Assembly: GCA_977017575.1 (NCBI GenBank) | Contig: CDRNVI010000046.1 | Location: 124,001-188,000 of the forward strand | Length of the DNA: 64,000 nt | DNA from: Paramoeba atlantica | Lineage: Eukaryota; Protista; Discosea | Direction: 5' to 3' | Shown here: positions 3,662 to 59,659 of the stretch, piece by piece | Layout of the letters: every line of letters starts with the position of its first letter | Numbering within the stretch: position 1 is the first letter of the stretch | Made by a program: the position numbers and the translations under genes | Notes under the pieces: model-generated | Database searches by the model: none | The model's input: the letters and a program-made list of their open reading frames with translations, nothing else | Told to the model about the DNA's origin: nothing

Positions 3662-4054
3662 GAACCTGACCGCACTGAGCGCGTTTTGAGATAGGTGACG
3701 TTGTGCACAAAAGTCTTGCATCCGGAGCCACAGCCTCTCCCTCGTTCCCCACGTACTTGTTGCCCACATGGGCTCGATTGCTTTCCGAACGATCTGACCG
3801 TGCGGATCCTTTGGGTTGAGTCCGAGTATATCGCATAAAAGGTTTGATCTCGTTTGTTCCCTTGCCAAAGGCGCTGCCGTTCCGAACACGTGTTTTCCCC
3901 TCCGAATTTGAAGTCTCGGTAAATCCGTTCTTTCCACTGCACTTGCACTTTCCATTCGCAAGAATAAAGATGAATTCGGAGAAGAGCCTGGTAAGTTCAC
4001 CCGCCGTATCCTCAACGGTCGGGCACGAGCATTTGTCGGGGTGGGGCACAAATC
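3662..4054 (-). pseudogene. Tyrosine recombinase of Y5, N-terminal part
   Basis: RERLWLRMQDFCAQRHLSQNALSAVRF aligns with RARLWERLTAFCNWKAIEITAIHAVTF of the intact YR. Confidence 0.8.
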
Positions 4055-4930
4055 CTATTGTGTGCGTCTTACGCCCGTCTGGGCGCCGCTCGCCACCCCC
4101 CCACGAAAAACCGGTTGTGGTGCCCCGCTTTGCAAACGAGGACATTGAGCGCGAACGTGACCAGTTTGGCGACAATTGTAGCATACACGCGCTCCTTTCA
4201 CAACCCGTGGTAGGCGATTCACACGCAGCTGTTCCTCTGTCATGATTTGTCCGTAACGATCCTGAGGATCATCATCCTTGTGAAGGCGCTGCTGAACACG
4301 TTCTACAGGAGCTCCCGCTGCTGCCCAATAATGATTTCTAAGCTCTTCGATGAGCATTTCCGCGATACAAATGAATTGCTCATCTTTCCATCCTTCCATC
4401 ACTCTAGCTGCACAAATCCACTTTACCAATATGGCAAACAAGCGCTCACGATGTGCCGGAGGATTGAAGCGAACTCCCAGCTCCGGAGTTTCACGCAGCT
4501 CACGAACAAGCTCTCGCGGCTTAAATTCATCCAGAGAGTCGATCCAAGCCGCCCACGTCAAAGGAACAAATGAAGAAAACTTAGATGGGTCACGAACTTG
4601 CATTCCTTCCAGCGCAGCTAGCTGCTCATCACGCGGCTGTCCACCTGGCATCGCCTTGTAAACTTTAACGATAGAAAGTGCGAAATAGTCAATCAGCGGA
4701 TGGGGGAACTCATACTCATTGTCAGGATCATCCTCCCACAGGGCCCAAATATCAAACTCATCACTGTTTTTCGCCTTCTTACGGTATACTTTACCCACAA
4801 CAGTTTGATTCACATCTTCACCGCGCTCGGCCCATGTTGCCTGTATTTGCACCTTAAATCCCTTCTCCAGCAAAGTCCTAACAAAAACTAGTGGTAACGT
4901 TCGGATGAAAATAGTCTCTAAAATAGTCAA
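4055..4930 (-). CDS. gag: Gag-like protein of Y5 with CCHC zinc knuckle
   Basis: CYNCRQTGHVRAQC; RELVRELRETPELG and EELRNHYW are shared with the other Gags. Confidence 0.85.
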   Translation of the reverse strand: MTILETIFIRTLPLVFVRTLLEKGFKVQIQATWAERGEDVNQTVVGKVYRKKAKNSDEFDIWALWEDDPDNEYEFPHPLIDYFALSIVKVYKAMPGGQPRDEQLAALEGMQVRDPSKFSSFVPLTWAAWIDSLDEFKPRELVRELRETPELGVRFNPPAHRERLFAILVKWICAARVMEGWKDEQFICIAEMLIEELRNHYWAAAGAPVERVQQRLHKDDDPQDRYGQIMTEEQLRVNRLPRVVKGARVCYNCRQTGHVRAQCPRLQSGAPQPVFRGGVASGAQTGVRRTQ

Positions 4931-5065: not shown

Positions 5066-5640
5066 GAGTTTTGTGTATTATTAGATCCACTCGGCGAACT
5101 GTCGTTGCACTTGTCCGCTGACCCGCTATCATGTTCACAACGTGTTGGGATATCTCCTCCGTTCCTGGACCCGTGATTGTTGTACACATGGAAAGACGAT
5201 ACGGATTTAGGCGGGTCGTTTTTGTGTTTCTTCCCCAGTAAATTATCACCTCGTTCTTGTCTGCCCTGACGAACCGGTCTTTTGTTAACTCTGCCACTTC
5301 CGTCCACCGCGCCGCGGCTTTCCAACATAGTAAAACTGCGATCGAATCTCGTGCTTAACTTGCCCCGCAATTTCTGTATGTGCCATGGCGTGGCCGGTGT
5401 CATCTGCCTGGTTGGTTCTAACGCGCCTCTTGCCTGGAGAGCCTTTGCGTAGAGTTGTAACGGGCCTGTGGGCTGGTTTGCGAGATTGAATATGGACTGG
5501 AGGCTGAATGAATGACAATAGGTGTTCAAGGAGTTCACCCGCCGCCTTTTCGACGGCTGGGCACGTGTGAAATAGTTTGGTGTCACCCTCCGCTTTCGTA
5601 GCGGTAGGGCACGAGCAAAATAAGGGGTGGGGAGCCTTTC
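5066..5640 (-). pseudogene. YR fragment of family Y8 (frameshifted and deleted; target of the Y5 insertion)
   Basis: LQLYAKALQARGALEPTRQM; EVIIYWGRNTKTTRLNPYR...GPGT. Confidence 0.8.
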
Positions 5641-6670
5641 CTATTGGCTCCGCTTTGCACCGGTGCCGCCCGTCACCCCACCGCGAAAACCCGCGCGAGA
5701 ATTCACTTGCTGATTGAGCGGACAGTTAGTGCGAAAGTGGCCGGGCTTGTGACAACGATAGCATAGTAAAGCGGGGCGGGCCACACCAGGCTTCGTGACA
5801 CTCATCTGACGTAACTTTTCCTCGGCAACCGCCGTAGAGTAGGCATCCTTCGTGTCGTCTTCCTTGTGGATCTTCAGCTGCACCCGCTCCACTTGAATTC
5901 CGGCCGCACTCCAGTAGTGATTTCGGAGCTCCTCTATAGCGGTACGAACGATTTCGATGAAGTGCTCTTCGCGCCACATTGGAAAAACCCGTGCTGCCTG
6001 CACCCATTCCTGAACAATCTTGAACAATCGTTCGCGGATAGGTGGGGGAGTAAGAAGAAGTCCGAATTCTGGGGAGGCTCGCAAATCGCGAATTAAATCC
6101 CGGACGCGCAACTCATCGGACTCCAGCCATGGGCCCCAAGTCAGCGGATCATTTGGAGTAAAGTGCGCAGGATCCGTAATCGGGGCATTCGGGGTCTTGG
6201 GTTCCTCGTCGGCCTTTCGTCCGCCGGGCATTTTCGCTCGGACTCGGATGATCTCCAAGGAGGAATTCGATATCAGGGAAGGGAAAGTCGTAGGCTATAC
6301 CTGGATCATCGGTCCACACTGCTTCCAAAGTACCCGCATCCTCATTCTTCAAACGTACAGTCCCAATAACCGTCTCTCGAACCGCATCACCTTGGTGTCC
6401 CCAAACCGCCTCCACAGAAACCTCGTAGCCTTTAGGAATTAAGGTCCGAACATTTTCCGCGAATTCCGCTTTAGCTTCATGAGACATGGCCGCTGAACCT
6501 GTACCTCCCCGGAGCAAGTCCGCCACCTGCTCGGGGTTTAACGTCGCACGTTCCTGTGCTGTCTGCAAGCTTGGATCAATCGGGTTGGGAGAAGCTGGAT
6601 CATCTCTCACAGGGCTCTGTTGCCTCCCTAAGGACAAAGTGCGGCGCACAGTATTCAATAGGCTAGACAT
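5641..6670 (-). pseudogene. gag: Gag of family Y8, one frameshift near 6260
   Basis: ORFs 6149-6670 and 5641-6258 together align with the other Gags; CYRCHKPGHFRTNC knuckle. Confidence 0.85.
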
Positions 6671-24000: not shown

Positions 24001-24201
24001 ACAAAAAACGCGTAAAGGAAAAGGATTCTACAAGTAAGTAATCAGTAAATATGTAAATTTTCAGAATACATATTGTAGCTTTTATACATGATTCAATTAC
24101 AACCCCCTTTCGGGGAAAAGAACAATGAAAATTATAACCCCCTTCCGGGGCATTTGACCCGATATTAGCCCCTCGGTTAAATTTCCATGCGTAGACTTCT
24201 A

Positions 24202-28837: not shown

Positions 28838-31800
28838 TTACATATAGCGGCTTTTCTTCACAAAAATGGGGGCATTCGTCAGTCTACCCCGTGATGTCTT
28901 GTACTGAGAAAACGTTACTGGATCCCCGGTATTAGCTTCTGGGTTGAGTGAACGAGCAATCCTGACTGTGCTGCCTTCTTCTGTATTTTTCAGTTTCCCT
29001 TTTTTCATATTCACTTTGTGTGGAGATTTTTCTTGGAGATCATGCTCCCTTTTTTGACCGTGATTAGATTTGTTTCCCTCCCTTTGCGTGTGAATGACGC
29101 ATGAAAAACGACGTGCAGCTGTTCTCTGTGCTTTGCGTGCTATTTCATCAGCTTTTTCATTGAAGGAATTCCCGCAGTGTGCCCGCACTTTAATAACGTA
29201 GAGACTACTATCTGTACAACGCTCTTTAATTGCTCCTTGTATCTGCGTGAGTAGGTCAGCATTTGGCATGCCACCGTATCCAATGATTGAAAAACGAACC
29301 CTAACATTATGATACCAGTCCCATACATAATGAGAATCAGTATGTATAACTGTGTTCCTCGTAGAAGACGAAGCTGCCTGAATGCCTAAAAGAAAGGAGC
29401 GAAGTTCAGCCCGATCCGGTGAAGTGCATTCCGGTGGTAAAACGTGTTGTCTGGTTCTTACACCATTTGAATTAACAATAACTATCCCCGAACCCGCGGC
29501 TGGTTTTCCTGCTTCTGAACTGACAGCCCCATCTACGTATATGTGTTCGGAATCAGCTGAGAGAGGAGAATGGTCCGTGCCTTCTTCAATTCCTTCGAGT
29601 ACTTTGTAGGTGGTAGTATCTAAGTCCTGGCATACCTTCTTCCAGGATCTAGAGCCGAAAACCATGTAGGATTTGTGAGATTCAAGATATTCACGCAAAA
29701 ATTTAACTCTCGACGCCCACCAATCCCGATCTCCCGCTAGGACATTGAGATCTTCGACATCTAGTTCCATGTCTTCAGCACATGCCTCTGATAGAGTGGG
29801 ACGATATTTCTTTCCTGTTGCTTTGCGCCATAGCATTACCGATTTGAAGGGATTATTGCCGCGGATCAGGTGTCCTAGCATTTGAACTCGGAGGACTCGA
29901 CATGCGTTAGAAAGTCGCATTCTGTTCCCATATAGTGCATCACATGGTGTACCTCTTGTACCATCCCAAGTACGAACCCCGAGCGCTAGTCTTCTCATTC
30001 GGTTCACTTCACAGTCAATTAAATCAGCGTCTTTTTTTATTAGGGAAAAGTTTCCACAGCCATACAGCAATAAAGGTGAAACCAGAGATTCGAATAAGTG
30101 AAATTTTGTGACAAGCGTGAGGCCTGATTTCCATAATGACTGTAGGCGATGTGTTGCAGCCCACGCTAAGTTAATTCGGTCTTCAAAGTTTACAATGACA
30201 CCCTTATTAGTAATTTTCAACCCCAAGTATCGATATTCGGTGATTCGAGGCACCAACCCCCCATTCGTTAGAATCAAGTCTCCTTGTGCGTCATTCACTT
30301 GACCTACTGTCATCCACGCAGTTTTATTTACACCAATGTTGAGACGTAAGTTGACTTTCGCAGCTGTTTGTTCCAGTCTTTCCATAACGCGATTCAAATT
30401 AGTAAGAGAGGGACATATGAGCACTAAATCATCCGCGTATGCTAAATAATTTAGACATTGCGCAGGCTTTCCTTGTCTTTTTGTGCCCGCCCTTCGCAAG
30501 ATAAGTCCGAACTCATTTTCCTTATACACTTCAGCCATGACTCGATCCAGAACCATGAGGAATAGGACAGGGGCCAAAACATCACCTTGAAGTGTGCCAC
30601 ACTGGATCGGAAACGTATCAGTAACTCCGCTTTTGCATCGTACAACTGCTTCTGTTTTTTCATACATAGACATTATCATGCTGCTGAGATGCTGCGGGAT
30701 GTGAAAGGCTTCCAGTGCAGCACGAATGGAGAAAAAGCTGACTGAAGGAAATGCCTGACGGAAATCCACGAAGCCTAGCGCAACACCAGGATTCTCACGA
30801 GACGCTTTCTGGCACAACTCAATGAGGGTTGCTTGTGCTCCCGTTGTTGCTCTATTGGGTCGGAATCCGTATTGACAATCACTTAATTGAGCATCCACTG
30901 TAGGAAGAATTCGATTTAGTATCATACGGTTCATGAGTTTTGCAGCGTGCACTATTAGACATATTGGTCTCCAATTGTTCATGTTGCCTAAGTCGCCTTT
31001 TTTCGGAACTGGGACTTGGATAACTCGTTTCCATGTCTGTGGCGCTCTTCCGCTCTCACGAACCATATTAATTAAATGTAGAAGAATAGATTGTATGAAC
31101 GGATCGCTGTTCAGTACTCGTAAGGCTTCAATTGGAATCGAGTCAATGCCTGGTGCTTTACCAGTTGCCATATCTTTAAGAGCAGTCGTCAATTCATTGA
31201 GATCAAACGGTCCATCAGATATAGGGATAAACGACTTTGGCGCTTCCGCAAATTTGATCTTGTTGTCTACCTCCTTTAGTTGCACAGTATTCTGAAAGTG
31301 TAATCGCACATTACATAATTGTTCGCTTTTTGTTTTTCCTGGCGGTCTGAGGCGTGATGAAGTGTGCCCAGTCATCATTTTAACATGTCTCCAAGAAGAA
31401 CGTTTGTATCTTTGAAAGTTTTGTTGTAGAGACAGGCATTCTTGAGTGATATTTTCATTCACGGTGATGCTATGTTCTTTTACTAGAGAATCGAACCTCT
31501 GCGGACTTTGAGACGTACGGAAAATGTCACGGATTCGCAACTGTGTAGTAGTTTCATCGTTTGAAGCAAACATGTTTATGTTTTTCTCCTTCGTTGGTAT
31601 AGATTCAGCAGCCATGATAATTGCTTTTTCCAATTTATCCCACAAAATATCACTTGGAAATATCACAGGCATTTCGGTTGACATTTTCTGGTTTGGCTCA
31701 TTTCGTCTTCTTTTCATCCCAACTATCTCCGCATGTTCGGTGTAGTTCTCTTTCACACGGCGTATGAAGTCCATACATATTTGTGGATCCTTTAACTGAT

Positions 31801-33043
31801 ACCACGGTAATCGCAAGCTACCGTCATTTACTGAAGCTTTCCAACGAAACTTAGTTTTTACTGTTACTATTTGATGTCGAGTCGGCACCGGGGGTTGGAG
31901 AACTCTGTGGCCATGTAAGGTAGTGACGAAACGTTTGTTGACAAGAATATGGTCTAGTTGTTTTACAGTTCCATTTTGAAAAGTATAAGTCCACTTCTTT
32001 CTGCTTGGGCAGGATGTATGTGCCGCGCGAGCCCCAAGCTCAGACAGTAAATTGGTAAGCCGATGTTGTGCCTTATTTTTACGCATTATTCGCTGACACT
32101 TATCTGTCAGTGGCGCATTAAGATCCCCCAGAACAAGTTTTATTTTCGCATTACTAAGATTCCATGCATCACGTAGATCATTGCAAAATTTCTCCTTTAC
32201 GTCATCTTTTGCCACCGCCGTGGGGGCATAAACATTGAATAGCACACCGTGGAATTTTGGTAAGTCTAGAGTAACCTGTTGGATCCGATCACTGATTCGC
32301 GACACAAGAGCAGGCTCAAATAGGCTTAGAATCATGAGTCCACCGTAACCTTTGATAGCGCCTTGAATATAAACATGAAATACGAACTTTCCATGACGAA
32401 TTGTCTGATGTGCAATGTTTTGAATGATATCGGTTTGTACACGAGTTTCCTGAAGGCAACAGAGGGCAAGGCCTCGCTCGACCATGTACGACATAATTTC
32501 CCGTAGTCGTGTCGATTTGCGAAGGGAGAAATAATCAGTTCCCTTTAGTTTCAGGGTAGTGACGTTTAGAGTTGCAAGATGTAGCGTCTTGTTCGTGGCA
32601 ATGGGGTTAGATTCCTCGACCGCCGGGGAGCCATTCCGACGGGGAAGTCGGGCAGAACGGTGCTTCCTACATTTCTTCTTACGGGGGGGTGCCACGCGGC
32701 CCGCACAGATCGCTACTCGTGGGTCTATAGGGGGAAAAGGAAACGATACTCCAGGACAACAGTCATAGCGAATACGCCATAGACCATTTTTGGCCCGAAA
32801 TTTCGCAGTCCCTTGCCACATCTTTAGCCTTTGAGCAAACGACCAGCGCCAGACCACAGCGACACGAGACCCCGCACGAATCGTGTTGGACATACTGGTT
32901 ACCGCACGATCACGGAGTTTTGCTACGCCAACCTTTGACTTTGATGGCCAAAAATTGACGCCCCGACCTAACCTGGACCGACCAATAAGAGCAACCGGGT
33001 CAGAACACCGCTTTCTCTCATTGACCGTGCCGGAGGTATCCAT
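28838..33043 (-). CDS. Intact 1401-aa APE endonuclease - RT - RNase H polyprotein (ingi/L1Tc-like domain order)
   Basis: APE: TLNV, LQETR, NVYAPT, GDLNA, LDHI. RT: APGIDS, WRPICL, QYGFRP, DFRQAF, QGD, YADD, YLG. RNase H: YVDG, RAEL, HTDS, KVRAH, NEKAD. Confidence 0.95.
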   Translation of the reverse strand: MDTSGTVNERKRCSDPVALIGRSRLGRGVNFWPSKSKVGVAKLRDRAVTSMSNTIRAGSRVAVVWRWSFAQRLKMWQGTAKFRAKNGLWRIRYDCCPGVSFPFPPIDPRVAICAGRVAPPRKKKCRKHRSARLPRRNGSPAVEESNPIATNKTLHLATLNVTTLKLKGTDYFSLRKSTRLREIMSYMVERGLALCCLQETRVQTDIIQNIAHQTIRHGKFVFHVYIQGAIKGYGGLMILSLFEPALVSRISDRIQQVTLDLPKFHGVLFNVYAPTAVAKDDVKEKFCNDLRDAWNLSNAKIKLVLGDLNAPLTDKCQRIMRKNKAQHRLTNLLSELGARAAHTSCPSRKKWTYTFQNGTVKQLDHILVNKRFVTTLHGHRVLQPPVPTRHQIVTVKTKFRWKASVNDGSLRLPWYQLKDPQICMDFIRRVKENYTEHAEIVGMKRRRNEPNQKMSTEMPVIFPSDILWDKLEKAIIMAAESIPTKEKNINMFASNDETTTQLRIRDIFRTSQSPQRFDSLVKEHSITVNENITQECLSLQQNFQRYKRSSWRHVKMMTGHTSSRLRPPGKTKSEQLCNVRLHFQNTVQLKEVDNKIKFAEAPKSFIPISDGPFDLNELTTALKDMATGKAPGIDSIPIEALRVLNSDPFIQSILLHLINMVRESGRAPQTWKRVIQVPVPKKGDLGNMNNWRPICLIVHAAKLMNRMILNRILPTVDAQLSDCQYGFRPNRATTGAQATLIELCQKASRENPGVALGFVDFRQAFPSVSFFSIRAALEAFHIPQHLSSMIMSMYEKTEAVVRCKSGVTDTFPIQCGTLQGDVLAPVLFLMVLDRVMAEVYKENEFGLILRRAGTKRQGKPAQCLNYLAYADDLVLICPSLTNLNRVMERLEQTAAKVNLRLNIGVNKTAWMTVGQVNDAQGDLILTNGGLVPRITEYRYLGLKITNKGVIVNFEDRINLAWAATHRLQSLWKSGLTLVTKFHLFESLVSPLLLYGCGNFSLIKKDADLIDCEVNRMRRLALGVRTWDGTRGTPCDALYGNRMRLSNACRVLRVQMLGHLIRGNNPFKSVMLWRKATGKKYRPTLSEACAEDMELDVEDLNVLAGDRDWWASRVKFLREYLESHKSYMVFGSRSWKKVCQDLDTTTYKVLEGIEEGTDHSPLSADSEHIYVDGAVSSEAGKPAAGSGIVIVNSNGVRTRQHVLPPECTSPDRAELRSFLLGIQAASSSTRNTVIHTDSHYVWDWYHNVRVRFSIIGYGGMPNADLLTQIQGAIKERCTDSSLYVIKVRAHCGNSFNEKADEIARKAQRTAARRFSCVIHTQREGNKSNHGQKREHDLQEKSPHKVNMKKGKLKNTEEGSTVRIARSLNPEANTGDPVTFSQYKTSRGRLTNAPIFVKKSRYM

Positions 33044-36000: not shown

Positions 36001-37368
36001 AAGGAAAGGTCTTACAATAAGGAAAGGTCTTACAATAAGGAAAGGTCTTACAATAAGGAAAGGTCTTACAATAAGGAAAGGTCTTACAATAAGGAAAGGT
36101 CTTACAATAAGGAAAGGTCTTACAATAAGGAAAGGTCTTACAATAAGGAAAGGTCTTACAATAAGGAAAGGTCTTACAATAAGGAAAGGTCTTACAATAA
36201 GGAAAGGTCTTACAATAAGGAAAGGTCTTACAATAAGGAAAGGTCTTACAATAAGGAAAGGTCTTACAATAAGGAAAGGTCTTACAATAAGGAAAGGTCT
36301 TACAATAAGGAAAGGTCTTACAATAAGGAAAGGTCTTACAATAAGGAAAGGTCTTACAATAAGGAAAGGTCTTACAATAAGGAAAGGTCTTACAATAAGG
36401 AAAGGTCTTACAATAAGGAAAGGTCTTACAATAAGGAAAGGTCTTACAATAAGGAAAGGTCTTACAATAAGGAAAGGTCTTACAATAAGGAAAGGTCTTA
36501 CAATAAGGAAAGGTCTTACAATAAGGAAAGGTCTTACAATAAGGAAAGGTCTTACAATAAGGAAAGGTCTTACAATAAGGAAAGGTCTTACAATAAGGAA
36601 AGGTCTTACAATAAGGAAAGGTCTTACAATAAGGAAAGGTCTTACAATAAGGAAAGGTCTTACAATAAGGAAAGGTCTTACAATAAGGAAAGGTCTTACA
36701 ATAAGGAAAGGTCTTACAATAAGGAAAGGTCTTACAATAAGGAAAGGTCTTACAATAAGGAAAGGTCTTACAATAAGGAAAGGTCTTACAATAAGGAAAG
36801 GTCTTACAATAAGGAAAGGTCTTACAATAAGGAAAGGTCTTACAATAAGGAAAGGTCTTACAATAAGGAAAGGTCTTACAATAAGGAAAGGTCTTACAAT
36901 AAGGAAAGGTCTTACAATAAGGAAAGGTCTTACAATAAGGAAAGGTCTTACAATAAGGAAAGGTCTTACAATAAGGAAAGGTCTTACAATAAGGAAAGGT
37001 CTTACAATAAGGAAAGGTCTTACAATAAGGAAAGGTCTTACAATAAGGAAAGGTCTTACAATAAGGAAAGGTCTTACAATAAGGAAAGGTCTTACAATAA
37101 GGAAAGGTCTTACAATAAGGAAAGGTCTTTACAATAAGGAAAGGTCTTACAATAAGGAAAGGTCTTACAATAAGGAAAGGTCTTACAATAAGGAAAGGTC
37201 TTACAATAAGGAAAGGTCTTACAATAAGGAAAGGTCTTACAATAAGGAAAGGTCTTACAATAAGGAAAGGTCTTACAATAAGGAAAGGTCTTACAATAAG
37301 GAAAGGTCTTACAATAAGGAAAGGTCTTACAATAAGGAAAGGTCTTACAATAAGGAAAGGTCTTACAA
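33060..37368. repeat. 18-bp tandem array (TTACAATAAGGAAAGGTC)n, about 239 copies
   Basis: Near-perfect; one extra T at about 37130. Confidence 0.98.
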
Positions 37369-38223
37369 GAATTGCTCATCAGAATATAATTTTAATAAAC
37401 AAATAATTAATTTGTAATCACTAAATATAATTTATCAAATACGAGGCACCCAAATACCTGTGTTTTGAACGTTACTATAAATAAAATTATTTGATGAATA
37501 TAGTACTAAAGGACGTCCTTATCAAAACAATCTTCACCTCTCTCTCTCTTGCGAATGGGTAGTTCCCCGGCGGGGAGTGGTTCGGGGGATGGCGGGTGGG
37601 GCAACTTTCCTTTTGCGAAAATAGAGAAAAGCTACTAGTGTAATAATAAAGTATAGTACTGTATAATTGATAATCTACAAATATACATGGTTCCCCCCAG
37701 AGGGGGCAATGTCACACTGAAATCAGATCATAATATTAAATATCATGTGCCCCGTAGGGCCACGGTCAGATCTCATACAGAATCAAAAGTATCTTCTTTG
37801 ATCAATTCTTTCCGTAAACTATAAGAATTGCTCATCAGAATATAATTTTAATAAACAAATAATTAATTTGTAATCACTAAATATAATTTATCAAATACGA
37901 GGCACCCAAATACCTGTGTTTTGAACGTTACTATAAATAAAATTATTTGATGAATATAGTACTAAAGGACGTCCTTATCAAAACAATCTTCACCTCTCTC
38001 TCTCTTGCGAATGGGTAGTTCCCCGGCGGGGACCACCCACTCGCCAGTTCTCACAATCACCCACACGCTAGTAATGTGGCGAAACCCCCAGGTCGCCTAC
38101 TACCTGAGAGCCCCCCTCATCACCTCGTACTCTCACTCACACATTGCCCAATCCTCACATCAACATACATCCCATACATATCAAAATCGCTCGAATATCC
38201 GTTCTTCCTGGTTATTGATTGTA

Positions 38224-41046
38224 TCAATGCTTTTTCTCTTCACACATTCTGCTATATGGATCTGCAGGATTTTCTTTTGATGCAATATATTCTGCCTGTA
38301 CTGCAATTCCTTGACGATTCAAATATTTCAACAAACCATACAACTCCGAAGTAATGCCATCAGATCCTGACACTTTCCTATTGATCGCTGCTAAACAGGA
38401 TGTATTGTCAACAAATAAATCTACGCATGTATCTCGCTGAAAGTGATGCCCGTACTTCTCAAACGCCAAACGTACTGCCCGAGCTTCGGCTCGATTCACT
38501 TCGTACTTGAAACCCTCCGGCCAGGAGGCTCCGGTACATAAAACTTTCCCATAGTCGAGGTAAAGCACCGCCCCCCACCCGGTGGACGACGCATCGGTAA
38601 ATAGAACGTGCTGATGTGGTACTGTATCAGGGTGTCGGACCGGGTCCACTGGAGAACAATAGATCAAGGAATCGCGCCACTCGGTCAACTTCACTCGCAC
38701 TCGTAATGGTAAAGGTACGACAGTATCCAATAGGCAAGGATCGCGATTTAAATGATTGATTCGTCGTCGGACAATTTTCAAGAATAGATGATATTGGGGA
38801 ATCGGTATGCCCATGATTGCCGAAGCAAAAATGAGCCTCCCAACACCGGCCTCCAGCCCAGAGTATGTGGTATGCATGTAGTTATCATTCTGAAGTCTTC
38901 GCGTTATCTTGGGTCCCAATGCAACTTTCCCTGATCGGTGGTGATAATTGACTCCATTGAATGTGTAGTTCTGCAAAGGTGGCACCCCAAGCTCCTTAAA
39001 ACGGGCGTTAACTTGCTGCGCCCGTCGATCTATAAACGCGGCATATTCCTGTGTATTTTTGTCACTAGAAGCGTAACGAATGCCGTCGATATACACATCC
39101 AGACCATTGTGGGCAAACGCCGATTTCTTATTACAGTAAGCTGGATCTCCCGCTATTGTCGCGGTTAACGAGTGCATCAACTCAGGGGCACACCGGTGTC
39201 CCATCGGCATCACATTCATTTCATATACTTGCCCACTGCGGTCCAAAAATCTGAACTTCGCCCTACTTTCGGATGGAATCGCGACCTGAAAAAAACCGCA
39301 TGCCAGATCACGCTTTACCGCCGAGTCCTGTCGGGCTCGATGGAGATAATAGGCTGCATGTTTTACCGGTACTTGTGGCTCATAAACCTCCTTAATCCGC
39401 GCGTTGTCATCCCGGGTCCATGCTATAAACCGCCGGCGTTCTGTCTCGTCGTCAGCAGGCTCGACAACCGTGAATGGTATCACCCATTCCATCGTTGGGC
39501 GACGCTGTGCTTCCTCTGTGTTGACGTGTGACACAAATCCTGCGTCCACCAGCTGGGTTATATCCTTGTCGTGCAATAATGATTTACACGCCGGTGTTTT
39601 ACTCGGAGTGTTTGGTAACCGAGTTAAAATTTTCCATGTCTCCTGGAAGCGCTCACGTGCTTTTTGGTTCATTAACAGTTTAAGTCGCTCGACCTCCATC
39701 TGTGGAATATTTAGCTTCACATGCAAGGGCAACTTCCAATCCCCCTCCTGTGCCACCTTAGAGGTCCTCCTCGATCTCGTTATTGTGTGCTTTACCTTCT
39801 CGTGTGGTATATCTTCCAAAAACTTGCTAAAAATAACCTCGGGGCTCACAGTATCTGTAGTTTTGACGTGGCCTTCTGGGTACCAAGCGCCAAGGCGGTA
39901 GTGACTGGGTCCGCATTGTACCGCAGGAGGGACTCCAGGGATTGGTGCTTTGCGAGATGTTGCACCTCGTCGAGTCGGATTGTCCCGTTGGCTACCTCTG
40001 TGAAAAGGTGTGTGATTGCGCCCCTCTTCGCCGAATGCGTGCCGTACCCCGCCCCTAACCGCTCTCGAATGCGGGCGTCGACCTCCGTCACCGTTGATCT
40101 GGACATTGGCTGGTGCTGTCCCAACTGACTGATGTACGCGTGAAGGGTAGCGGTTCCGGGGCCCTCGATCACCGTGTACATGGAGGGTCGGTATGGGTTG
40201 AACCTGGAAGTCTTTGTTTTTCGCCCCCACCAAATCACTATTCTTAACGGCGTTAATTCGCGAAATTGTTCCTTCGTCAAACTTGCAGTCTCTGTCCACC
40301 GGCTGGCTGCTTTCCAACAAAGCATCAAGGTATGTCTTTCGCTGCATGGGAGATGGTGCCATAACTGGTTCAGTAACGTGGGTGTCAAAGGAGCCATCTG
40401 GCGTACTGGCTCCGTGGCCCCTTCTGCCATCAGTGATTTTACATAAAATTTTAGAGGATTCGTTTCCAGGCCTGCGAGGCTTAATATAGAAGCGAGGCTG
40501 CGTGCGTACGTGAGCTTGCCCTGTACTCTGATGTTCATCGTCGCCACAAAAGTTACTGCATGTATCGCGGTAATTTCGATTGCCTTCCAATTGCAAAAGG
40601 CGGTTAGTCTTTCCCACAACCTCGCCCTGCTTTTCCAGGTTGCGTTGCTCCACATCTCGGACATCCCATCTAGTGCTACACGGACCTCTTCCGTCACGTG
40701 AGTAATTCCCATTAATAACTTCATCAACTTCATCCTTACTGGCGTAGTATCCACACTTAACATTCCTCCGTACAAACTCCCAGATCTTATCAATCTCCCT
40801 TTCAAGTCGCCTGCACTTGGTACATTCACCGTCTGCTTTTCCGTTTGTAACCTTCTCTCCCTCCTCCTTTTCTTTGCAACTTGCATATTCGACACACTTT
40901 TCCCCTTGAATATAATAACACTGGCCGTTAGGGTGGGGCTTTTTCATAAGCTCTTGCTGCTCCCGGCAGGGCCAGCCACCCGCGAACGAAAATCCCGCTT
41001 TGGACAGTTTTTCCATACATGATCGGGTGAACGGCACCCAAAACAC
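38224..41046 (-). CDS. ORF3 RT/RNase H of Y3; overlaps the gag end and all of YR in the -1 frame
   Basis: KRDLACGFFQV, MPMGHRCAPE, DVYIDG, LFTDASSTGWG, EVNRAEA, FVDN, NPADPYSR. Confidence 0.93.
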   Translation of the reverse strand: MFWVPFTRSCMEKLSKAGFSFAGGWPCREQQELMKKPHPNGQCYYIQGEKCVEYASCKEKEEGEKVTNGKADGECTKCRRLEREIDKIWEFVRRNVKCGYYASKDEVDEVINGNYSRDGRGPCSTRWDVRDVEQRNLEKQGEVVGKTNRLLQLEGNRNYRDTCSNFCGDDEHQSTGQAHVRTQPRFYIKPRRPGNESSKILCKITDGRRGHGASTPDGSFDTHVTEPVMAPSPMQRKTYLDALLESSQPVDRDCKFDEGTISRINAVKNSDLVGAKNKDFQVQPIPTLHVHGDRGPRNRYPSRVHQSVGTAPANVQINGDGGRRPHSRAVRGGVRHAFGEEGRNHTPFHRGSQRDNPTRRGATSRKAPIPGVPPAVQCGPSHYRLGAWYPEGHVKTTDTVSPEVIFSKFLEDIPHEKVKHTITRSRRTSKVAQEGDWKLPLHVKLNIPQMEVERLKLLMNQKARERFQETWKILTRLPNTPSKTPACKSLLHDKDITQLVDAGFVSHVNTEEAQRRPTMEWVIPFTVVEPADDETERRRFIAWTRDDNARIKEVYEPQVPVKHAAYYLHRARQDSAVKRDLACGFFQVAIPSESRAKFRFLDRSGQVYEMNVMPMGHRCAPELMHSLTATIAGDPAYCNKKSAFAHNGLDVYIDGIRYASSDKNTQEYAAFIDRRAQQVNARFKELGVPPLQNYTFNGVNYHHRSGKVALGPKITRRLQNDNYMHTTYSGLEAGVGRLIFASAIMGIPIPQYHLFLKIVRRRINHLNRDPCLLDTVVPLPLRVRVKLTEWRDSLIYCSPVDPVRHPDTVPHQHVLFTDASSTGWGAVLYLDYGKVLCTGASWPEGFKYEVNRAEARAVRLAFEKYGHHFQRDTCVDLFVDNTSCLAAINRKVSGSDGITSELYGLLKYLNRQGIAVQAEYIASKENPADPYSRMCEEKKH
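39846..40895 (-). CDS. Tyrosine recombinase of Y3
   Basis: SRWTE (R), KTK (K), HSAKRGA, AKH, LLRY (Y). Confidence 0.93.
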   Translation of the reverse strand: MSNMQVAKKRRRERRLQTEKQTVNVPSAGDLKGRLIRSGSLYGGMLSVDTTPVRMKLMKLLMGITHVTEEVRVALDGMSEMWSNATWKSRARLWERLTAFCNWKAIEITAIHAVTFVATMNIRVQGKLTYARSLASILSLAGLETNPLKFYVKSLMAEGATEPVRQMAPLTPTLLNQLWHHLPCSERHTLMLCWKAASRWTETASLTKEQFRELTPLRIVIWWGRKTKTSRFNPYRPSMYTVIEGPGTATLHAYISQLGQHQPMSRSTVTEVDARIRERLGAGYGTHSAKRGAITHLFTEVANGTIRLDEVQHLAKHQSLESLLRYNADPVTTALALGTQKATSKLQIL

Positions 41047-42137
41047 AGCATTCCCGGTCTTCGGTATGGCGCAGGCGCGCGAGCTGGTGTGACGTGCGGA
41101 GTAAAATAACGCTGCGATCCTTGAGGTACATACGTGGCGTATGCTCGAGATAAACGTTTTTCTCTTTCGGCCAGCTGATCACTCACGTGGTGGTAAAATT
41201 TATCGTTGGGACGCACGTCTTTTTGCATTTTCTCATGTACTAGCTCCACGTCCACGCGACGCGCACGCCAGTACGCGTCACGTAGCGATTGGATAATTGC
41301 TCGGCCCATCTCAAGAAAAGTACTCTGGTTCCACCCGGGCGTTTGTCGAGCCAGAATAATCCACTTGCAGAAAATTCCATTAAAATTACGCTCTTGCTGT
41401 TTTACGAAAGTACGATCTTGGAAGTACTGGTTAACTCGTAATCCAAACTCAGGTGCATCACGCAGTTCACGTATTAAATCCCTCGTTCGAAACCCACCCT
41501 CATCGAGAGACATAATCCACGGCTCAAATGTAATGGGCTCATAGGGATCCAGGGCGTTCGGGTCGAGAACCAACGGGGATGCATCTGTCGAAAATATCAC
41601 TTCCGCAGGTTCCTCATTAACACGAGTTTCATCGAGCGCGTTCATTTGCCGTACAGGTCGGCGCCCTTGTGTCGGTAACATCGCAGAGGGTACAGTTGGT
41701 TGAGTTCCTGGCGTGGTCGAAGGTTGTGTCGGATCTCCTGCTGTCTGTGGCCCCCCCTGGGCTGTCCCTCCCCTCGTCTCGGTCTGTGGAACCTCCCCTG
41801 GAAAATGGTGGATTTTTACCTGATAATAATTCAGTTCCGCATGAGGAAAAGGATACTCTTTCGTGGGTTCATCTTCCCACACGGCCCATAACTCCAAACC
41901 TTCCTGACGAACTTTTCCGTACACTGCTTTTATTGATTCATTGGGCTCGTCCTTGCGGCGAAAAAAAGCTTGCACTGACACCGCCGGCTTGTCGGCCGGT
42001 GCCAAAAGAAGTCTCTCCCGGATCACTGCACATACATTGGTCAGATCGTGCGTCGTAAGCGGCTCGGTAGGCGCGAGCGGCTCCGTCACAGGAGAGGAAC
42101 GTCGGGAGCTCCGTAAGCTCCGCGTCGAAGGATTCAT
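40944..42137 (-). CDS. gag: Gag-like protein of Y3
   Basis: First ATG at 42137 just inside A1; CFGCRSPDHVWKNC knuckle. Confidence 0.88.
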   Translation of the reverse strand: MNPSTRSLRSSRRSSPVTEPLAPTEPLTTHDLTNVCAVIRERLLLAPADKPAVSVQAFFRRKDEPNESIKAVYGKVRQEGLELWAVWEDEPTKEYPFPHAELNYYQVKIHHFPGEVPQTETRGGTAQGGPQTAGDPTQPSTTPGTQPTVPSAMLPTQGRRPVRQMNALDETRVNEEPAEVIFSTDASPLVLDPNALDPYEPITFEPWIMSLDEGGFRTRDLIRELRDAPEFGLRVNQYFQDRTFVKQQERNFNGIFCKWIILARQTPGWNQSTFLEMGRAIIQSLRDAYWRARRVDVELVHEKMQKDVRPNDKFYHHVSDQLAEREKRLSRAYATYVPQGSQRYFTPHVTPARAPAPYRRPGMLCFGCRSPDHVWKNCPKRDFRSRVAGPAGSSKSL

Positions 42138-42376
42138 AGTTGCGAGTTCTGATCGCAACTTTCCTTTTGCGAAAATAGAGAAAAGCTACTAGTGTAATAA
42201 TAAAGTATAGTACTGTATAATTGATAATCTACAAATATACATGGTTCCCCCCAGAGGGGGCAATGTCACACTGAAATCAGATCATAATATTAAATATCAT
42301 GTGCCCCGTAGGGCCACGGTCAGATCTCATACAGAATCAAAAGTATCTTCTTTGATCAATTCTTTCCGTAAACTAT

Positions 42377-45300
42377 AATAAGGAAAGGTCTTACAATAAG
42401 GAAAGGTCTTACAATAAGGAAAGGTCTTACAATAAGGAAAGGTCTTACAATAAGGAAAGGTCTTACAATAAGGAAAGGTCTTACAATAAGGAAAGGTCTT
42501 ACAATAAGGAAAGGTCTTACAATAAGGAAAGGTCTTACAATAAGGAAAGGTCTTACAATAAGGAAAGGTCTTACAATAAGGAAAGGTCTTACAATAAGGA
42601 AAGGTCTTACAATAAGGAAAGGTCTTACAATAAGGAAAGGTCTTACAATAAGGAAAGGTCTTACAATAAGGAAAGGTCTTACAATAAGGAAAGGTCTTAC
42701 AATAAGGAAAGGTCTTACAATAAGGAAAGGTCTTACAATAAGGAAAGGTCTTACAATAAGGAAAGGTCTTACAATAAGGAAAGGTCTTACAATAAGGAAA
42801 GGTCTTACAATAAGGAAAGGTCTTACAATAAGGAAAGGTCTTACAATAAGGAAAGGTCTTACAATAAGGAAAGGTCTTACAATAAGGAAAGGTCTTACAA
42901 TAAGGAAAGGTCTTACAATAAGGAAAGGTCTTACAATAAGGAAAGGTCTTACAATAAGGAAAGGTCTTACAATAAGGAAAGGTCTTACAATAAGGAAAGG
43001 TCTTACAATAAGGAAAGGTCTTACAATAAGGAAAGGTCTTACAATAAGGAAAGGTCTTACAATAAGGAAAGGTCTTACAATAAGGAAAGGTCTTACAATA
43101 AGGAAAGGTCTTACAATAAGGAAAGGTCTTACAATAAGGAAAGGTCTTACAATAAGGAAAGGTCTTACAATAAGGAAAGGTCTTACAATAAGGAAAGGTC
43201 TTACAATAAGGAAAGGTCTTACAATAAGGAAAGGTCTTACAATAAGGAAAGGTCTTACAATAAGGAAAGGTCTTACAATAAGGAAAGGTCTTACAATAAG
43301 GAAAGGTCTTACAATAAGGAAAGGTCTTACAATAAGGAAAGGTCTTACAATAAGGAAAGGTCTTACAATAAGGAAAGGTCTTACAATAAGGAAAGGTCTT
43401 ACAATAAGGAAAGGTCTTACAATAAGGAAAGGTCTTACAATAAGGAAAGGTCTTACAATAAGGAAAGGTCTTACAATAAGGAAAGGTCTTACAATAAGGA
43501 AAGGTCTTACAATAAGGAAAGGTCTTACAATAAGGAAAGGTCTTACAATAAGGAAAGGTCTTACAATAAGGAAAGGTCTTACAATAAGGAAAGGTCTTAC
43601 AATAAGGAAAGGTCTTACAATAAGGAAAGGTCTTACAATAAGGAAAGGTCTTACAATAAGGAAAGGTCTTACAATAAGGAAAGGTCTTACAATAAGGAAA
43701 GGTCTTACAATAAGGAAAGGTCTTACAATAAGGAAAGGTCTTACAATAAGGAAAGGTCTTACAATAAGGAAAGGTCTTACAATAAGGAAAGGTCTTACAA
43801 TAAGGAAAGGTCTTACAATAAGGAAAGGTCTTACAATAAGGAAAGGTCTTACAATAAGGAAAGGTCTTACAATAAGGAAAGGTCTTACAATAAGGAAAGG
43901 TCTTACAATAAGGAAAGGTCTTACAATAAGGAAAGGTCTTACAATAAGGAAAGGTCTTACAATAAGGAAAGGTCTTACAATAAGGAAAGGTCTTACAATA
44001 AGGAAAGGTCTTACAATAAGGAAAGGTCTTTACAATAAGGAAAGGTCTTACAATAAGGAAAGGTCTTACAATAAGGAAAGGTCTTACAATAAGGAAAGGT
44101 CTTACAATAAGGAAAGGTCTTACAATAAGGAAAGGTCTTACAATAAGGAAAGGTCTTACAATAAGGAAAGGTCTTACAATAAGGAAAGGTCTTACAATAA
44201 GGAAAGGTCTTACAATAAGGAAAGGTCTTACAATAAGGAAAGGTCTTACAATAAGGAAAGGTCTTACAATAAGGAAAGGTCTTACAATAAGGAAAGGTCT
44301 TACAATAAGGAAAGGTCTTACAATAAGGAAAGGTCTTACAATAAGGAAAGGTCTTACAATAAGGAAAGGTCTTACAATAAGGAAAGGTCTTACAATAAGG
44401 AAAGGTCTTACAATAAGGAAAGGTCTTACAATAAGGAAAGGTCTTACAATAAGGAAAGGTCTTACAATAAGGAAAGGTCTTACAATAAGGAAAGGTCTTA
44501 CAATAAGGAAAGGTCTTACAATAAGGAAAGGTCTTACAATAAGGAAAGGTCTTACAATAAGGAAAGGTCTTACAATAAGGAAAGGTCTTACAATAAGGAA
44601 AGGTCTTACAATAAGGAAAGGTCTTACAATAAGGAAAGGTCTTACAATAAGGAAAGGTCTTACAATAAGGAAAGGTCTTACAATAAGGAAAGGTCTTACA
44701 ATAAGGAAAGGTCTTACAATAAGGAAAGGTCTTACAATAAGGAAAGGTCTTACAATAAGGAAAGGTCTTACAATAAGGAAAGGTCTTACAATAAGGAAAG
44801 GTCTTACAATAAGGAAAGGTCTTACAATAAGGAAAGGTCTTACAATAAGGAAAGGTTTACAATAAGGAAAGGTCTTACAATAAGGAAAGGTCTTACAATA
44901 AGGAAAGGTCTTACAATAAGGAAAGGTCTTACAATAAGGAAAGGTCTTACAATAAGGAAAGGTCTTACAATAAGGAAAGGTCTTACAATAAGGAAAGGTC
45001 TTACAATAAGGAAAGGTCTTACAATAAGGAAAGGTCTTACAATAAGGAAAGGTCTTACAATAAGGAAAGGTCTTACAATAAGGAAAGGTCTTACAATAAG
45101 GAAAGGTCTTACAATAAGGAAAGGTCTTACAATAAGGAAAGGTCTTACAATAAGGAAAGGTCTTACAATAAGGAAAGGTCTTACAATAAGGAAAGGTCTT
45201 ACAATAAGGAAAGGTCTTACAATAAGGAAAGGTCTTACAATAAGGAAAGGTCTTACAATAAGGAAAGGTCTTACAATAAGGAAAGGTCTTACAATAAGGA

Positions 45301-51739: not shown

Positions 51740-54698
51740 GCATAATAAATAACATGTATCGAATAGTAAACAAAGAAACAACTAAAATGTATCTGATTGC
51801 TCACAAGCCCTATTTCCCAATCTCAAAACATAACATCAACATTAAACTGTAAATAATATGTTCTCACGACAATTTTAGGCCTGCAAACATATATGTCACT
51901 GTCACTCTGTTAACGGGGTTCCCCCCACCGGAACCCTCGACCAAATGGCTGGGGGCTCGGTGGGCGGGCACAAAAACTTTTGAAACGTAAGTAGAAAAAA
52001 TAGCCTACCAAGAATATAAAGAATGAATAATGAAATTACAACACTATTTGAAACAAATCATAATTTGAAGAAATTATGTGCCCCGAAGGGCCAAGCAGGC
52101 ATAAACAACTCCCTGCCCCGCGGCTAAATTTCCAAACGTGGCGGTTGCGGCGGCGGCGGTTGCGGCGGGAACGGAGATCCGGGGTAGAGGGCGAGCCGGG
52201 AGGGAGAGACTGCGACGACGGAGACGTATCGGGGAGAAACGACGCGGAGGAGGAGTATTGCCACGCATGCGTGGCCGTCTTTCTCGTCGGCGGAGGAGCG
52301 GGGAGGGAATGGGGGTAGTAAATTCCACCCGTCGTCGCCTGGGACGACGGGCACGAGCAATAATTGGGGTGGGGAGCATTTCCTAGTGGAAAGCCCGCGA
52401 TGCGCCGTAACGGTTGGCGCCGCCCACCACCCCGCCGCGAAAATCCTGTGGCGGGGCGCGTGTGGTACGGAACTGTCCCCCCTGTTGTTGAGATGTTTGC
52501 GGGCAATTCGATCGGAGGTGGCCTGGCTGATGACAGCCCAAACAAAACGGTCCCTGGCTGCGTCGTCGAGGAGCACGCTGCGCAGTCCGGCCCCTCAGTT
52601 GCTCGTCGACCACAAGCTGACCGTAGCGGTCCTGAGGGTCGTCGTCACGGTGCAACCGCTGTTGCACACGTTCGACTGCAACACCCGCCGCAGCCCAATA
52701 ATGGTTGCGAAGCTCTTCGATGATGAGAAGGGCTACGGCGAGGTTGTGCTTCTCTAGCCAACCCTCAGTGTTGCGCGCAGCGTAAACCCATTCAGTTTTT
52801 CGAGAAATGGCGTCCTTCATAAGTTGGGTTCCGGTTCGACTTTTTTTTTTTTTTTTTTTTTTTTTATAAAATTAGGAATAGTATTTCCGTACCGATGCAA
52901 TACGCATCGTTCCATTCACATGGTAAGATCAACAATTTTCAATAATCGAAAACCAAATTATTACTGATTTGTCGCAATGGCATACCTAGAAATGGCATAC
53001 CTAGTATGGTTAAATTGTGCATTCGCTTTCTTGCTTGTCTCGTCCAAGATATTTCTTTAACTGTGTGTATGCGACAGCGCCGTTAAGTTCTTGCAAGAGA
53101 AGTTGAAACTCCTCTTTTATTTGTTGTCGGGGACGTCCGCTGGCATCCGCCAGTGCCGTAAGCAGAGCTTGTGTGTCCGTGTGCATAGAGCCTCCTGATA
53201 ATATGGGAATGCATTTAAAGGATTCTTCAGCTATTTTGCCGGTTTTAACGTAGGTATCATGTTTTCGTTTACAAGCCTCTCGAAATAGATTGGCGCATTT
53301 AACTGCGAGATTGGAGGGTGCTAGTTCATGGACGATTGTCAAGTCATAGTAGATTTCTCCACTTGCCCAATGAACAACTAAGTCGGGTCCTGATCGGCGA
53401 AACGATTTGCCGCCGCATGTTTTTTCGTGTGTCCTCTTGTGACTCGGGTCGACGACCTCATCGCATTGTGTGCACCGGAGGGTAGAGAAGGTGCGCGGCT
53501 CTTTCTCTTCAGTTAACATCTTTCTCTTCAGTTAACATCTTGAACAGGCGCTCGCGCTGCGGCGGAGGGTTGAAGCGTACCCCAAGCTGCGGAGCTTCGC
53601 GCAGCTCACGGATGAGTTCACGTGGCTTGAACAAATCATCCGTGTCGATCCACGGTTGCCAAGTAACCGGATCGTAGGGGGAGAAGCTTTTCGGGTCCGT
53701 AACACGGACGCGTTCAAACGCCGGAATCAAATCTTCAACTGGTTTCCCACCCGGCATCTGCGCCCGAACATGGGCAAGGTCCAAGGAGTGGTAGTTGATC
53801 TCGGGATGGGGAAAACGGTAGGCTGTATTCACGTCCCCATCCCATTCTGTGAACAACTCAGTTGATTCAGGGTCCTTGGGATGCGTCATATGCACCCGCC
53901 CTATAGCCGTCTGCCGTAGGCCATCTCGGGGAAGAGACCATACAGCTTCGACGGTGACCTCATACCGTTTGCGCAGAAGGCCAATCACTTTCATGACAAA
54001 CTCTTCTTTGCCCTGGCTGGTCATGATTCCTCGGGCATCAAGGCGTGAACGCTGGGGCACCTCGGCGTGGTCAATGTCGAGGGCATCGTATCGACGAGGC
54101 GAGCGAGAAGCCTCAACCTGGTCAGGGTTGAGGGTCCCCTTGCGACGAATTGGGGCCTCCGGAGCGTCGAGCGGAATAGGGTAGGGACTGGTAAACGAGC
54201 TCGTGGGGAGACTCGGGAGATTACTTGGGAGCGGGCTTGGTGGTTCACGGGCCGGGCTCAAAGCTCTGCCAGATGGACGTATCTTCCGTCGCGCTGGGCC
54301 TGGGGTAGGGGGAACATGAGTGGGTTTCGCGGGTACCTGCGGAGCTGGCTGCGTCGGGAGAGAGGGAAGAGGGGGCCGTACGGGAGGACACGAGAGGGAC
54401 TGGCGCTTGGAACGCGAAAATGACGAAGTTTCGATCGGTGTCGGGGCGCGGTCTCTTTTTGGAGAGCGATCACGATCCTGGCTTGGCTCGTGTGGAGCCC
54501 GCAAACGTTGGGATCTCATCACAAAAACTTTTGAAACGTAAGTAGAAAAAATAGCCTACCAAGAATATAAAGAATGAATAATGAAATTACAACACTATTT
54601 GAAACAAATCATAATTTGAAGAAATTATGTGCCCCGAAGGGCCAAGCAGGCATAAACAACTCCCTGCCCCGCGGCTAAATTTCCAAACGTGGACTATT
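51740..54698 (-). mobile_element. Deleted YR retrotransposon (family Y7); gag split by a CRE-A insertion
   Basis: A repeats 51969-52141 and 54520-54692; G-rich linker at about 51945; gag 54519-53508 plus 52797-52383 (KMLTE|WVYAAR; CLGCHQPGHLRSNC). Left boundary approximate. Confidence 0.85.
52798..53507 (-). mobile_element. 5'-truncated CRE-A (RLE part) in the Y7 gag
   Basis: EPRTF...GPDLVVHW...YYDLTIVH; poly(A) 52841-52864; TSD ttcagtt at 52791 and 53508. Confidence 0.85.
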
Positions 54699-59650: not shown

Positions 59651-59659
59651 AGAAGAGAT

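Follow-up and report, generated by a model that had tools for sequence, protein, structure and literature searches.

A probable -1 programmed frameshift cassette joining Gag to reverse transcriptase/RNase H in VIPER-like tyrosine-recombinase retrotransposons

VIPER and TATE of trypanosomatids, which the elements treated here resemble, are retrotransposons with a gag-like open reading frame (ORF), overlapping ORFs for a tyrosine recombinase (YR) and for a reverse transcriptase with RNase H (RT/RH), and split direct repeats (PMC6681497, PMC12278014, PMC5146736), the repeats being arranged as A1 ... B1-A2-B2 (PMC6681497). These papers take the three ORFs as separate genes and mention no frameshift signal, and how the overlapping YR and RT genes are expressed has been left open so far, the VIPER, TATE, and DIRS papers simply listing three ORFs. 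A 64,000-nt stretch of the Paramoeba atlantica assembly GCA_977017575.1 (contig CDRNVI010000046.1, positions 124,001 to 188,000 of the forward strand; hereafter the window) contains four copies of related elements, Y3, Y5, Y7, and Y8, of which Y3 is the sole intact one. We report that the junction between gag and the RT/RH frame (ORF3) of these copies and of their relatives carries a conserved cassette that very probably directs -1 programmed ribosomal frameshifting and would produce a Gag-RT/RNase H fusion. This is a well-known kind of signal, apparently undescribed for the VIPER-like group. An earlier note on this DNA had likewise taken the mechanism as not known to be described for this YR group, which agrees with the searchable literature on VIPER, TATE, DIRS, and Ngaro elements, where programmed frameshifting is unmentioned, with the exception of the 2006 VIPER paper (Lorenzi), in which an earlier mention is possible. 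Full-text literature searches for frameshifting together with VIPER or with kinetoplastid retrotransposons gave no relevant result, and the accessible part of a large frameshifting review mentions neither DIRS elements nor tyrosine recombinases.

Recoding signals of comparable design are known from several groups of viruses and retroelements. In retroviruses and long terminal repeat retrotransposons (Rous sarcoma virus, human immunodeficiency virus 1, and mouse mammary tumor virus, with A_AAA_AAC, U_UUU_UUA, and other heptamers), a heptamer near the gag end is followed by a 5-9 nt spacer and a G:C-rich structure, and pol lies in the -1 frame without a start of its own, with a Gag-RT fusion setting the Gag:Pol ratio. 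The window elements share this layout. Different from retroviruses, however, they are YR retrotransposons without protease or DDE integrase, and their downstream stem spans the gag stop codon. The setting is also unusual in that a third gene, the recombinase gene, trails gag in the zero frame and is overprinted for about 1 kb by the frameshift ORF. Pea enation mosaic virus 2, red clover necrotic mosaic virus, and barley yellow dwarf virus, representing umbra-, diantho-, and luteoviruses (PMC13098196, PMC5009743), resemble the window elements in using the unusual heptamers G_GAU_UUU and G_GGU_UUU with a weakly re-pairing P-site codon, in having a zero-frame stop close by, and in carrying a branched or pseudoknotted downstream element. 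The viral elements differ in relying on pairing with the distant 3' end of their genome, none of which was seen here, although no search for it was made, and there is no sequence or Rfam similarity between the two sets of signals; the cassette matched no Rfam family. Stop-restart systems of victoriviruses (AUGA) and of SART1 (UAAUG) offer a further comparison, with an overlapping stop/start in the -1 frame in Y3 and in one relative (L002) and with RNA structure around the stop, but the overlapping AUG is not conserved across families, whereas the upstream heptamer is.

By gene layout and split repeats, the elements are classified as VIPER-like tyrosine-recombinase (DIRS-order) retrotransposons. 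Y3 encodes a gag-like ORF and overlapping YR and RT/RNase H ORFs without a methyltransferase domain, and it carries A1 at its 5' end and B1-A2-B2 at its 3' end, with A repeats of 227 nt and B repeats of 213 nt. The three frames comprise 397, 365, and 923 codons, compared with 446, 338, and 945 amino acids in the VIPER of Trypanosoma cruzi. A CCHC-type knuckle is encoded in Y3 gag a little upstream of the proposed slip site, and zf-CCHC zinc knuckles were found by Pfam in the gag of Y5/Y8. Among the element ORFs, Pfam matches to RVT_1 and RT_RNaseH are confined to ORF3. The complete open frame of Y3 ORF3 (38224-41046, 940 codons) has these domains at amino acids ~563-685 and ~813-887, respectively, both in its distal half, and its initial ~400 codons overprint the YR gene. 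In the YR frame, an ATG is first met 60 nt beyond the gag stop, counted from its first base. The YR ORF at 39846-40895 matches Phage_integrase.

The earlier note had proposed a slippery heptamer at the gag end of all four copies, and inspection of the minus strand confirmed GGATTTT in Y3 and Y7, GGTTTTT in Y5, and GGGTTTT in Y8, each in the gag frame at the position given. The distance to the gag stop, put at 14-18 codons, is 42 nt in Y3, 54 nt in Y7, 48 nt in Y5, and 42 nt in Y8, measured from the heptamer end. The Y3 heptamer itself lies sixteen codons ahead of its TGA. The -1 relationship of ORF3, previously checked in Y3 and Y5, is now seen in all four copies. In Y3 this frame reads GGA TTT TCG at the heptamer, and the predicted conserved segment begins in every copy with GFS at the heptamer and continues to (A/V/K)PHP just past the gag stop. 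The spacer and stem were likewise recovered: 6-7 nt after the heptamer comes GGG(G)TG(G), and its complement, (C)CACCC(C), is located 7-11 nt past the stop. We searched both strands of the window and of the loci of the nine relatives described below for a heptamer, spacer, GGG-arm, and complementary arm, and found the complementary arm 5-19 nt past an in-frame stop solely at gag/ORF3 junctions, which indicates that the cassette is more than a chance arrangement.

Relatives were picked by RT homology and not by the heptamer, so they provide an independent test of this observation. A word-based search found two relatives in a metagenome assembly, and an exhaustive HMMER search found 1503. Nine junctions (L001-L009), drawn from metagenome and SRA contigs, were added to the four of the window, giving 13 junctions from about 11 divergent lineages, with nine intact elements. 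The RT/RH proteins of these nine relatives are 32-63% identical to that of Y3. The named nearest relatives come from the Papus ankaliazontas transcriptome and from Diplonema papillatum, indicating that the group is euglenozoan; relatives occur in kinetoplastids and diplonemids. No zinc-knuckle Gag was present among the annotated proteins of the Diplonema relatives.

All nine relatives have a heptamer in the gag frame, which is G_GAU_UUU in seven, G_GUU_UUU in L006, and G_GAU_UUC in L009. Eight of them (L001, L003-L009) keep a gag stop, 27-81 nt past the heptamer end, and G_GNU_UUY occurs in the gag frame of all eight against an estimated chance of about 0.015 per junction. The slip site is kept in 13/13 junctions while the flanks are saturated with change; in a MAFFT alignment, GG.TTT is the sole invariant block, with a nearly invariant TC behind it. 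The gag codon preceding GNU ends in G in every junction, and the residue encoded by GNU itself varies among Asp, Val, and Gly. An invariant third-position G next to a variable gag residue points to constraint on the nucleotides G-G-N-U-U-U-Y, as a shift site requires. The A-site half of the heptamer is canonical, and the P-site half is of the relaxed G_GN type documented in viruses (PMC5009743). As the earlier note had stated, these are known -1 shift sites: G_GA and G_GU variants, G_GGU_UUU, and A_AAA_AAC are documented in PMC5009743, and GGAUUUU, GGGUUUU, GGGUUUC, and AAAUUUU are used by umbraviruses or umbra-like viruses (PMC13098196). Genomic runs contain higher-copy sister families that share the 60-nt patch between the S1 arms (see below) at a likeness of at least 80%, and a variant spacer, CGAGGAC, behind an unchanged GGAUUUU.

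Two relatives appear to have altered reading frames at the cassette. In the decayed copy L002 (5222-5300), the G run behind the heptamer is longer by one G, which joins gag and ORF3 in frame, and no gag stop is present; this insertion could be the DNA-level equivalent of the proposed slip, and it could also be a homopolymer assembly error. The N-terminus of another relative from the HMMER search, P0006, mixes two junction frames (…GWLALLRAARVYD… then …LPNGQ…), which suggests that the cassette of this copy has yet a different pattern of indels.

The downstream stem, S1, can be drawn in 13/13 junctions between a G-rich arm 6-8 nt past the heptamer and a C-rich arm 4-16 nt past the gag stop. The covariation check suggested in the earlier note was made across these junctions, and both S1 and a second helix, S2, show compensatory change. 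Seven arm-pair types occur in S1: GGGUGG:CCACCC (Y3, Y5, Y7, L001, and L002), GGGGUG:CACCCC (Y8), GGGUGA:UCACCC (L003), GGGGGG:CCUCCC (L004), GGGGGA:UCCCCC (L005-L007), GGGACG:CGUCCC (L008), and GGGGGU:GCCCCC (L009). Over its 6 bp, 78/78 pairs are canonical, and changes on both sides are found at three of the six positions. These counts were made outside the MAFFT alignment, in which the 3' arms of L004, L006, L008, and L009 are out of register. When arm types were permuted, with registers chosen by eye, a single assignment of 5040, the cognate one, kept all pairs. An automatic best-helix score in fixed windows gave 205 for cognate arms versus 172 +/- 8 for permuted ones (11 lineages, P = 1.2e-4) and 155 +/- 9 with shuffled 3' windows, and when the 3' window was slid over about 950 nt per junction, an equally good helix was reached at 0-10% of positions. 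S1 or a one-register variant is present in the minimum free energy (MFE) fold of nearly all 13 junctions; there it mostly encloses a multiloop holding two inner hairpins, of which the second has the gag stop in or beside its loop. A hairpin with the stop in or next to the loop (Y3 40941-40954, minus strand) is seen in about 10 of the 13 MFE folds, and its stem sequence differs per family.

The 5' arm of S2 begins 0-3 nt past the S1 5' arm (0 in 10/13 junctions), and its 3' arm lies 4-13 nt past the S1 3' arm. Examples of the paired arms are CUGGCC:GGCCAG, CUGGCAA:UUGCCAG, CGAGCG:UGCUCG, ACCGG:UCGGU, and CGGGC:GCUCG, and cognate arms score 157 versus 128 +/- 8 for permuted ones (P < 5e-5). The 3' arm motif GCCAG is retained even where it falls in another ORF3 phase (L008 and L009), pointing to constraint at the RNA level. 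The order S1a-S2a-S1b-S2b is crossing, that is, a pseudoknot topology with a long insertion at the helix junction; loop L1 is 0 in most junctions and L3 is 4-9 nt. If the two helices form jointly, S2 would cross and reinforce S1.

The described VIPER and TATE elements can be compared with this cassette directly. In the VIPER of T. cruzi Dm28c, ORF1 spans 1-1341, YR starts at 1342 in the same frame, and ORF3 starts at 1218 in the -1 frame with a 124-nt overlap (Ribeiro et al. 2019, PMC6681497). We found A_AAA_AAC in the gag frame of the VIPER copy MBSY01000682.1 (PMC6681497 supplement 10), whose gag tail reads ...CCA TCA AAA AAC GGC CGA GGG GCT GCC GCA CGC CGC TCA TGA. A 6-nt spacer leads to a perfect 10-bp stem (GGGGCUGCCG / CGGCAGCCCC) with a 24-nt loop that contains the gag TGA, and the YR ATG is immediately behind this stop. 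Judged from its sequence, T. cruzi VIPER carries a predicted textbook cassette of the same geometry with another heptamer and stem. A complete TATE copy (PMC6681497 supplement 11) has a gag-like tail ...TCA AAT TTT TAG, in which A_AAU_UUU abuts the stop. Next come a 6-nt spacer and a hairpin of 6 bp (GUCCUG/CAGGAC), and by hand translation more than 100 codons of the -1 frame are free of stops. The putative signal seems to belong to the VIPER-like superfamily as a whole, with G_GNU_UUU in the window families, A_AAA_AAC in T. cruzi VIPER, and A_AAU_UUU in TATE. In some copies of the Bodo saltans VIPER (PMC6681497 supplement 3), the listed ORF coordinates place RT/RH in the gag frame with YR in +1, or RT/RH in +1 with YR in -1; the frame relation of YR to RT is constant and the gag frame differs. 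Decay of some copies by indels could account for these differences, as could recoding layouts that are not the same.

The coordinates of Y3 and of the cassettes in the other three copies are collected in Table 1. The -1 frame of Y5, Y7, and Y8 is cut after 135-163 codons.

Table 1. Features of the intact element Y3 and cassettes of the other three copies, in window positions.
Feature	Position	Strand	Remark
Y3 whole element	37364..42381	(-)	VIPER-type split direct repeats
Y3 repeat A1	42155-42381	(-)	100% identical to A2
Y3 repeat B1	37820-38032	(-)	100% identical to B2
Y3 repeat A2	37601-37827	(-)	100% identical to A1
Y3 repeat B2	37364-37576	(-)	100% identical to B1
Y3 gag ORF	40944..42137	(-)	397 aa from first ATG; stop TGA 40944-40946
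Y3 slippery heptamer G_GAU_UUU	40989..40995	(-)	gag frame
Y3 S1 5' arm GGGUGG	40976..40981	(-)	7 nt past heptamer
Y3 S2 5' arm CUGGCC	40970..40975	(-)	directly 3' of S1 5' arm
Y3 S1 3' arm CCACCC	40931..40936	(-)	7 nt past gag stop; same bases code PHP in ORF3
Y3 S2 3' arm GGCCAG	40921..40926	(-)	4 nt past S1 3' arm; crosses S1
Y3 ORF3, -1 frame	38224..40995	(-)	923 codons, heptamer to stop
Y3 tyrosine recombinase (YR) frame	39846..40943	(-)	365 codons; gag frame, immediately behind gag stop
Y5 cassette	4026..4112	(-)	decayed copy
Y5 heptamer G_GUU_UUU	4106-4112	(-)	
Y5 S1 arms	4093-4098 / 4039-4044	(-)	
Y5 S2 arms	4087-4092 / 4026-4031	(-)	
Y5 gag stop TAG	4055-4057	(-)	
Y7 cassette	52354..52446	(-)	decayed copy
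Y7 heptamer G_GAU_UUU	52440-52446	(-)	
Y7 S1 arms	52427-52432 / 52367-52372	(-)	
Y7 S2 arms	52421-52426 / 52354-52359	(-)	
Y7 gag stop TAG	52383-52385	(-)	
Y8 cassette	5612..5692	(-)	copy truncated by Y5
Y8 heptamer G_GGU_UUU	5686-5692	(-)	
Y8 S1 arms	5674-5679 / 5624-5629	(-)	
Y8 S2 arms	5667-5672 / 5612-5617	(-)	
Y8 gag stop TAG	5641-5643	(-)	

The routes by which ribosomes might enter ORF3 and YR are constrained by the frames themselves. From the heptamer on, the -1 frame is open for 873-1026 codons in 9/9 intact elements, and in the upstream direction it runs into a stop 7-66 codons before the heptamer. No in-frame ATG precedes the heptamer in 10 of 12 junctions, and the first one downstream is 14-372 codons on. 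In all nine intact families, and likewise in T. cruzi VIPER, YR shares the frame of gag and follows immediately on its stop. Past the gag stop, an ATG is first met 0-131 codons on, and the first one in any frame belongs to the YR frame in seven of the nine intact families; in an eighth (L004), the first ATG clear of the gag stop does so. A hypothetical sub-mRNA starting there would yield YR and not ORF3. In L007, YR homology starts about 22 codons ahead of the first ATG. It is possible that YR is made by stop readthrough (as Gag-YR) or by reinitiation.

Separate translation of ORF3, either from an mRNA of its own (for example, a trans-spliced one) or by internal or non-AUG initiation, would mean that the heptamer and arms are conserved only through the overlapping frames. 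Earlier authors did regard ORF3 as standing on its own, with alternative start codons (PMC5146736). Moreover, euglenozoan mRNAs are made by trans-splicing, which makes sub-mRNAs conceivable, a C-rich tract followed by CAG lies just past the gag stop in many families, and Y3 and Y5 have -1-frame ATGs 7-24 codons before the heptamer. We nevertheless consider this explanation unlikely, given the lack of an upstream ATG in the other ten junctions and the YR frame of the first ATG past the stop in most families; dual coding also leaves unexplained the compensatory changes in S1 and S2 and the invariant G ahead of a variable gag codon. It is very improbable that no recoding occurs at all, with the first ~400 ORF3 codons untranslated and RT/RNase H made from an internal AUG near the RT domain. 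The N-terminal region of ORF3 overlaps YR and is conserved only among close relatives, and a shorter third ORF has been reported in some T. cruzi copies (PMC5146736), but chance would not be expected to keep a 400-codon frame across YR free of stops in nine of nine intact, highly divergent elements and also in T. cruzi VIPER, and the -1 frame opens just before the heptamer in every case.

Two further explanations place the event at the stop codon or in the RNA. Termination-reinitiation in the -1 frame at AUGA, assisted by RNA structure as in victoriviruses or SART1, would fit the ATGA at the gag stop of Y3 and L002 and the position of the stop codon in or next to a small hairpin loop in most families. 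However, ATGA is restricted to these two, the overlapping codon being CTG, GTG, TTG, ATA, or CTA in other families, a ribosome that has reached the stop would have unwound the S1 and S2 5' arms by then, and neither the conserved slippery heptamer 27-81 nt upstream nor a -1 frame kept open from exactly the heptamer on is explained, all of which renders reinitiation highly unlikely. Database ORF3 proteins starting with MT, MS, or MN had also suggested an ATGA stop-restart; these starts proved to be GTG or TTG codons that a prokaryotic gene caller had chosen. Slippage during transcription, or some other +1 nt change in the RNA at the U/A run, could fuse the frames in some transcripts, since the shift site contains a homopolymer run (T4-T5, or A6 in T. 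cruzi VIPER), and the genomic copy of L002 has a frame-fusing 1-nt insertion. Yet known cases of polymerase slippage involve runs much longer than 4-5 U, the insertion of L002 affects the G run past the heptamer and not the T run, and a precisely spaced downstream RNA structure is a hallmark of ribosomal slippage. We regard this explanation as extremely improbable.

Several points weigh against ribosomal frameshifting as well. The -1-frame ATGs of Y3 and Y5 and the ATGA of Y3 and L002 are among them. Both S1 arms encode conserved residues (...GGV... in gag, PHP or a Pro-rich stretch in ORF3), and part of their conservation is consequently protein-coding. Folding energy over about 90 nt past the heptamer is not better than that of shuffled sequences (z +1.2 to -2.7), so the case rests on covariation and not on stability. 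Contiguous S1 and S2 5' arms (L1 = 0) are awkward for a compact H-type pseudoknot, and the two helices may replace each other instead of forming together. P-site re-pairing is poor for G_GAU_UUU and G_GUU_UUU, which require a strong stimulator. Substitutions between Y3 and L001 (9 differences in the overlap and 23 past the stop) show no significant bias by frame and are too sparse to show which frame is selected in the overlap. The sole RNA-labelled run of the organism contained nothing of the element, and the element-bearing runs are unlabelled and probably genomic. We found no report of -1 frameshifting by kinetoplastid cytoplasmic ribosomes.

On balance, a -1 programmed frameshift remains the very probable function of the cassette. 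Every sequence-level prediction that follows from the Gag-Pol fusion proposed in the earlier note was borne out, and the pattern extends well beyond the four window copies. We infer slippage, and some efficiency of it, from the heptamer, the frames, the spacing, the covarying helices, and the lack of an ORF3 start codon. A ribosome translating gag would meet G_GNU_UUU with an Asp, Val, or Gly tRNA in the P site and a Phe tRNA on UUU in the A site, at which moment the G:C-rich S1, starting 6-7 nt downstream, would be at the mRNA entry channel. S1 would close a structured loop holding the gag stop and would probably be reinforced by the crossing S2. Some ribosomes would then slip back by one base (UUU to UUU, GNU to GGN) and go on in the -1 frame, yielding a Gag-ORF3 fusion with reverse transcriptase and RNase H, and those that do not slip would stop 14-27 codons later and release free Gag. 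As in retroviruses, the slip would set the Gag:Pol ratio and bring RT into Gag assemblies.

A broader proposal, which we put forward only tentatively and think somewhat less probable than the contrary, is that a single recoding hub of about 100 nt gives three products from one mRNA across the VIPER-like superfamily, with T. cruzi VIPER among its members. Gag would come from termination, Gag-RT/RNase H from the -1 shift at the heptamer, driven by a covarying, pseudoknot-like structure around the gag stop, and YR from stop readthrough or from reinitiation at the next AUG downstream. If true, it would provide the first -1 frameshift signal documented for kinetoplastid nuclear genes. For the superfamily, the conserved, covarying cassette offers a concrete and testable answer to how the overlapping genes may be expressed, and would align these elements with retroviral Gag-Pol logic. 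In annotation, ORF3 would begin at the heptamer as a Gag fusion and not at the first ATG or at an alternative start. The cassettes may also serve as natural reporters for whether kinetoplastid ribosomes frameshift, and the short signature of heptamer, spacer, and S1/S2 gives a means of locating and assessing potentially active copies across Euglenozoa, the abundant T. cruzi VIPER among them.

Y3 sits inside a long array of 18-bp tandem repeats that continues on both sides (37000-37500 and 42265-42800). A further YR fragment was identified at 23693-25261 on the minus strand, where a 420-aa ORF without Pfam match has its stop at 23999-24001; right behind this stop, and in the same frame, comes the C-terminal part of a recombinase. 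The rest of the window is a retroelement graveyard (28838-33043, 18307-21306, and 55364-59651 on the minus strand and 62161-63804 on the plus strand), containing a long interspersed nuclear element with APE, RT, and RNase H of 1401 aa and several more RVT_1 ORFs.

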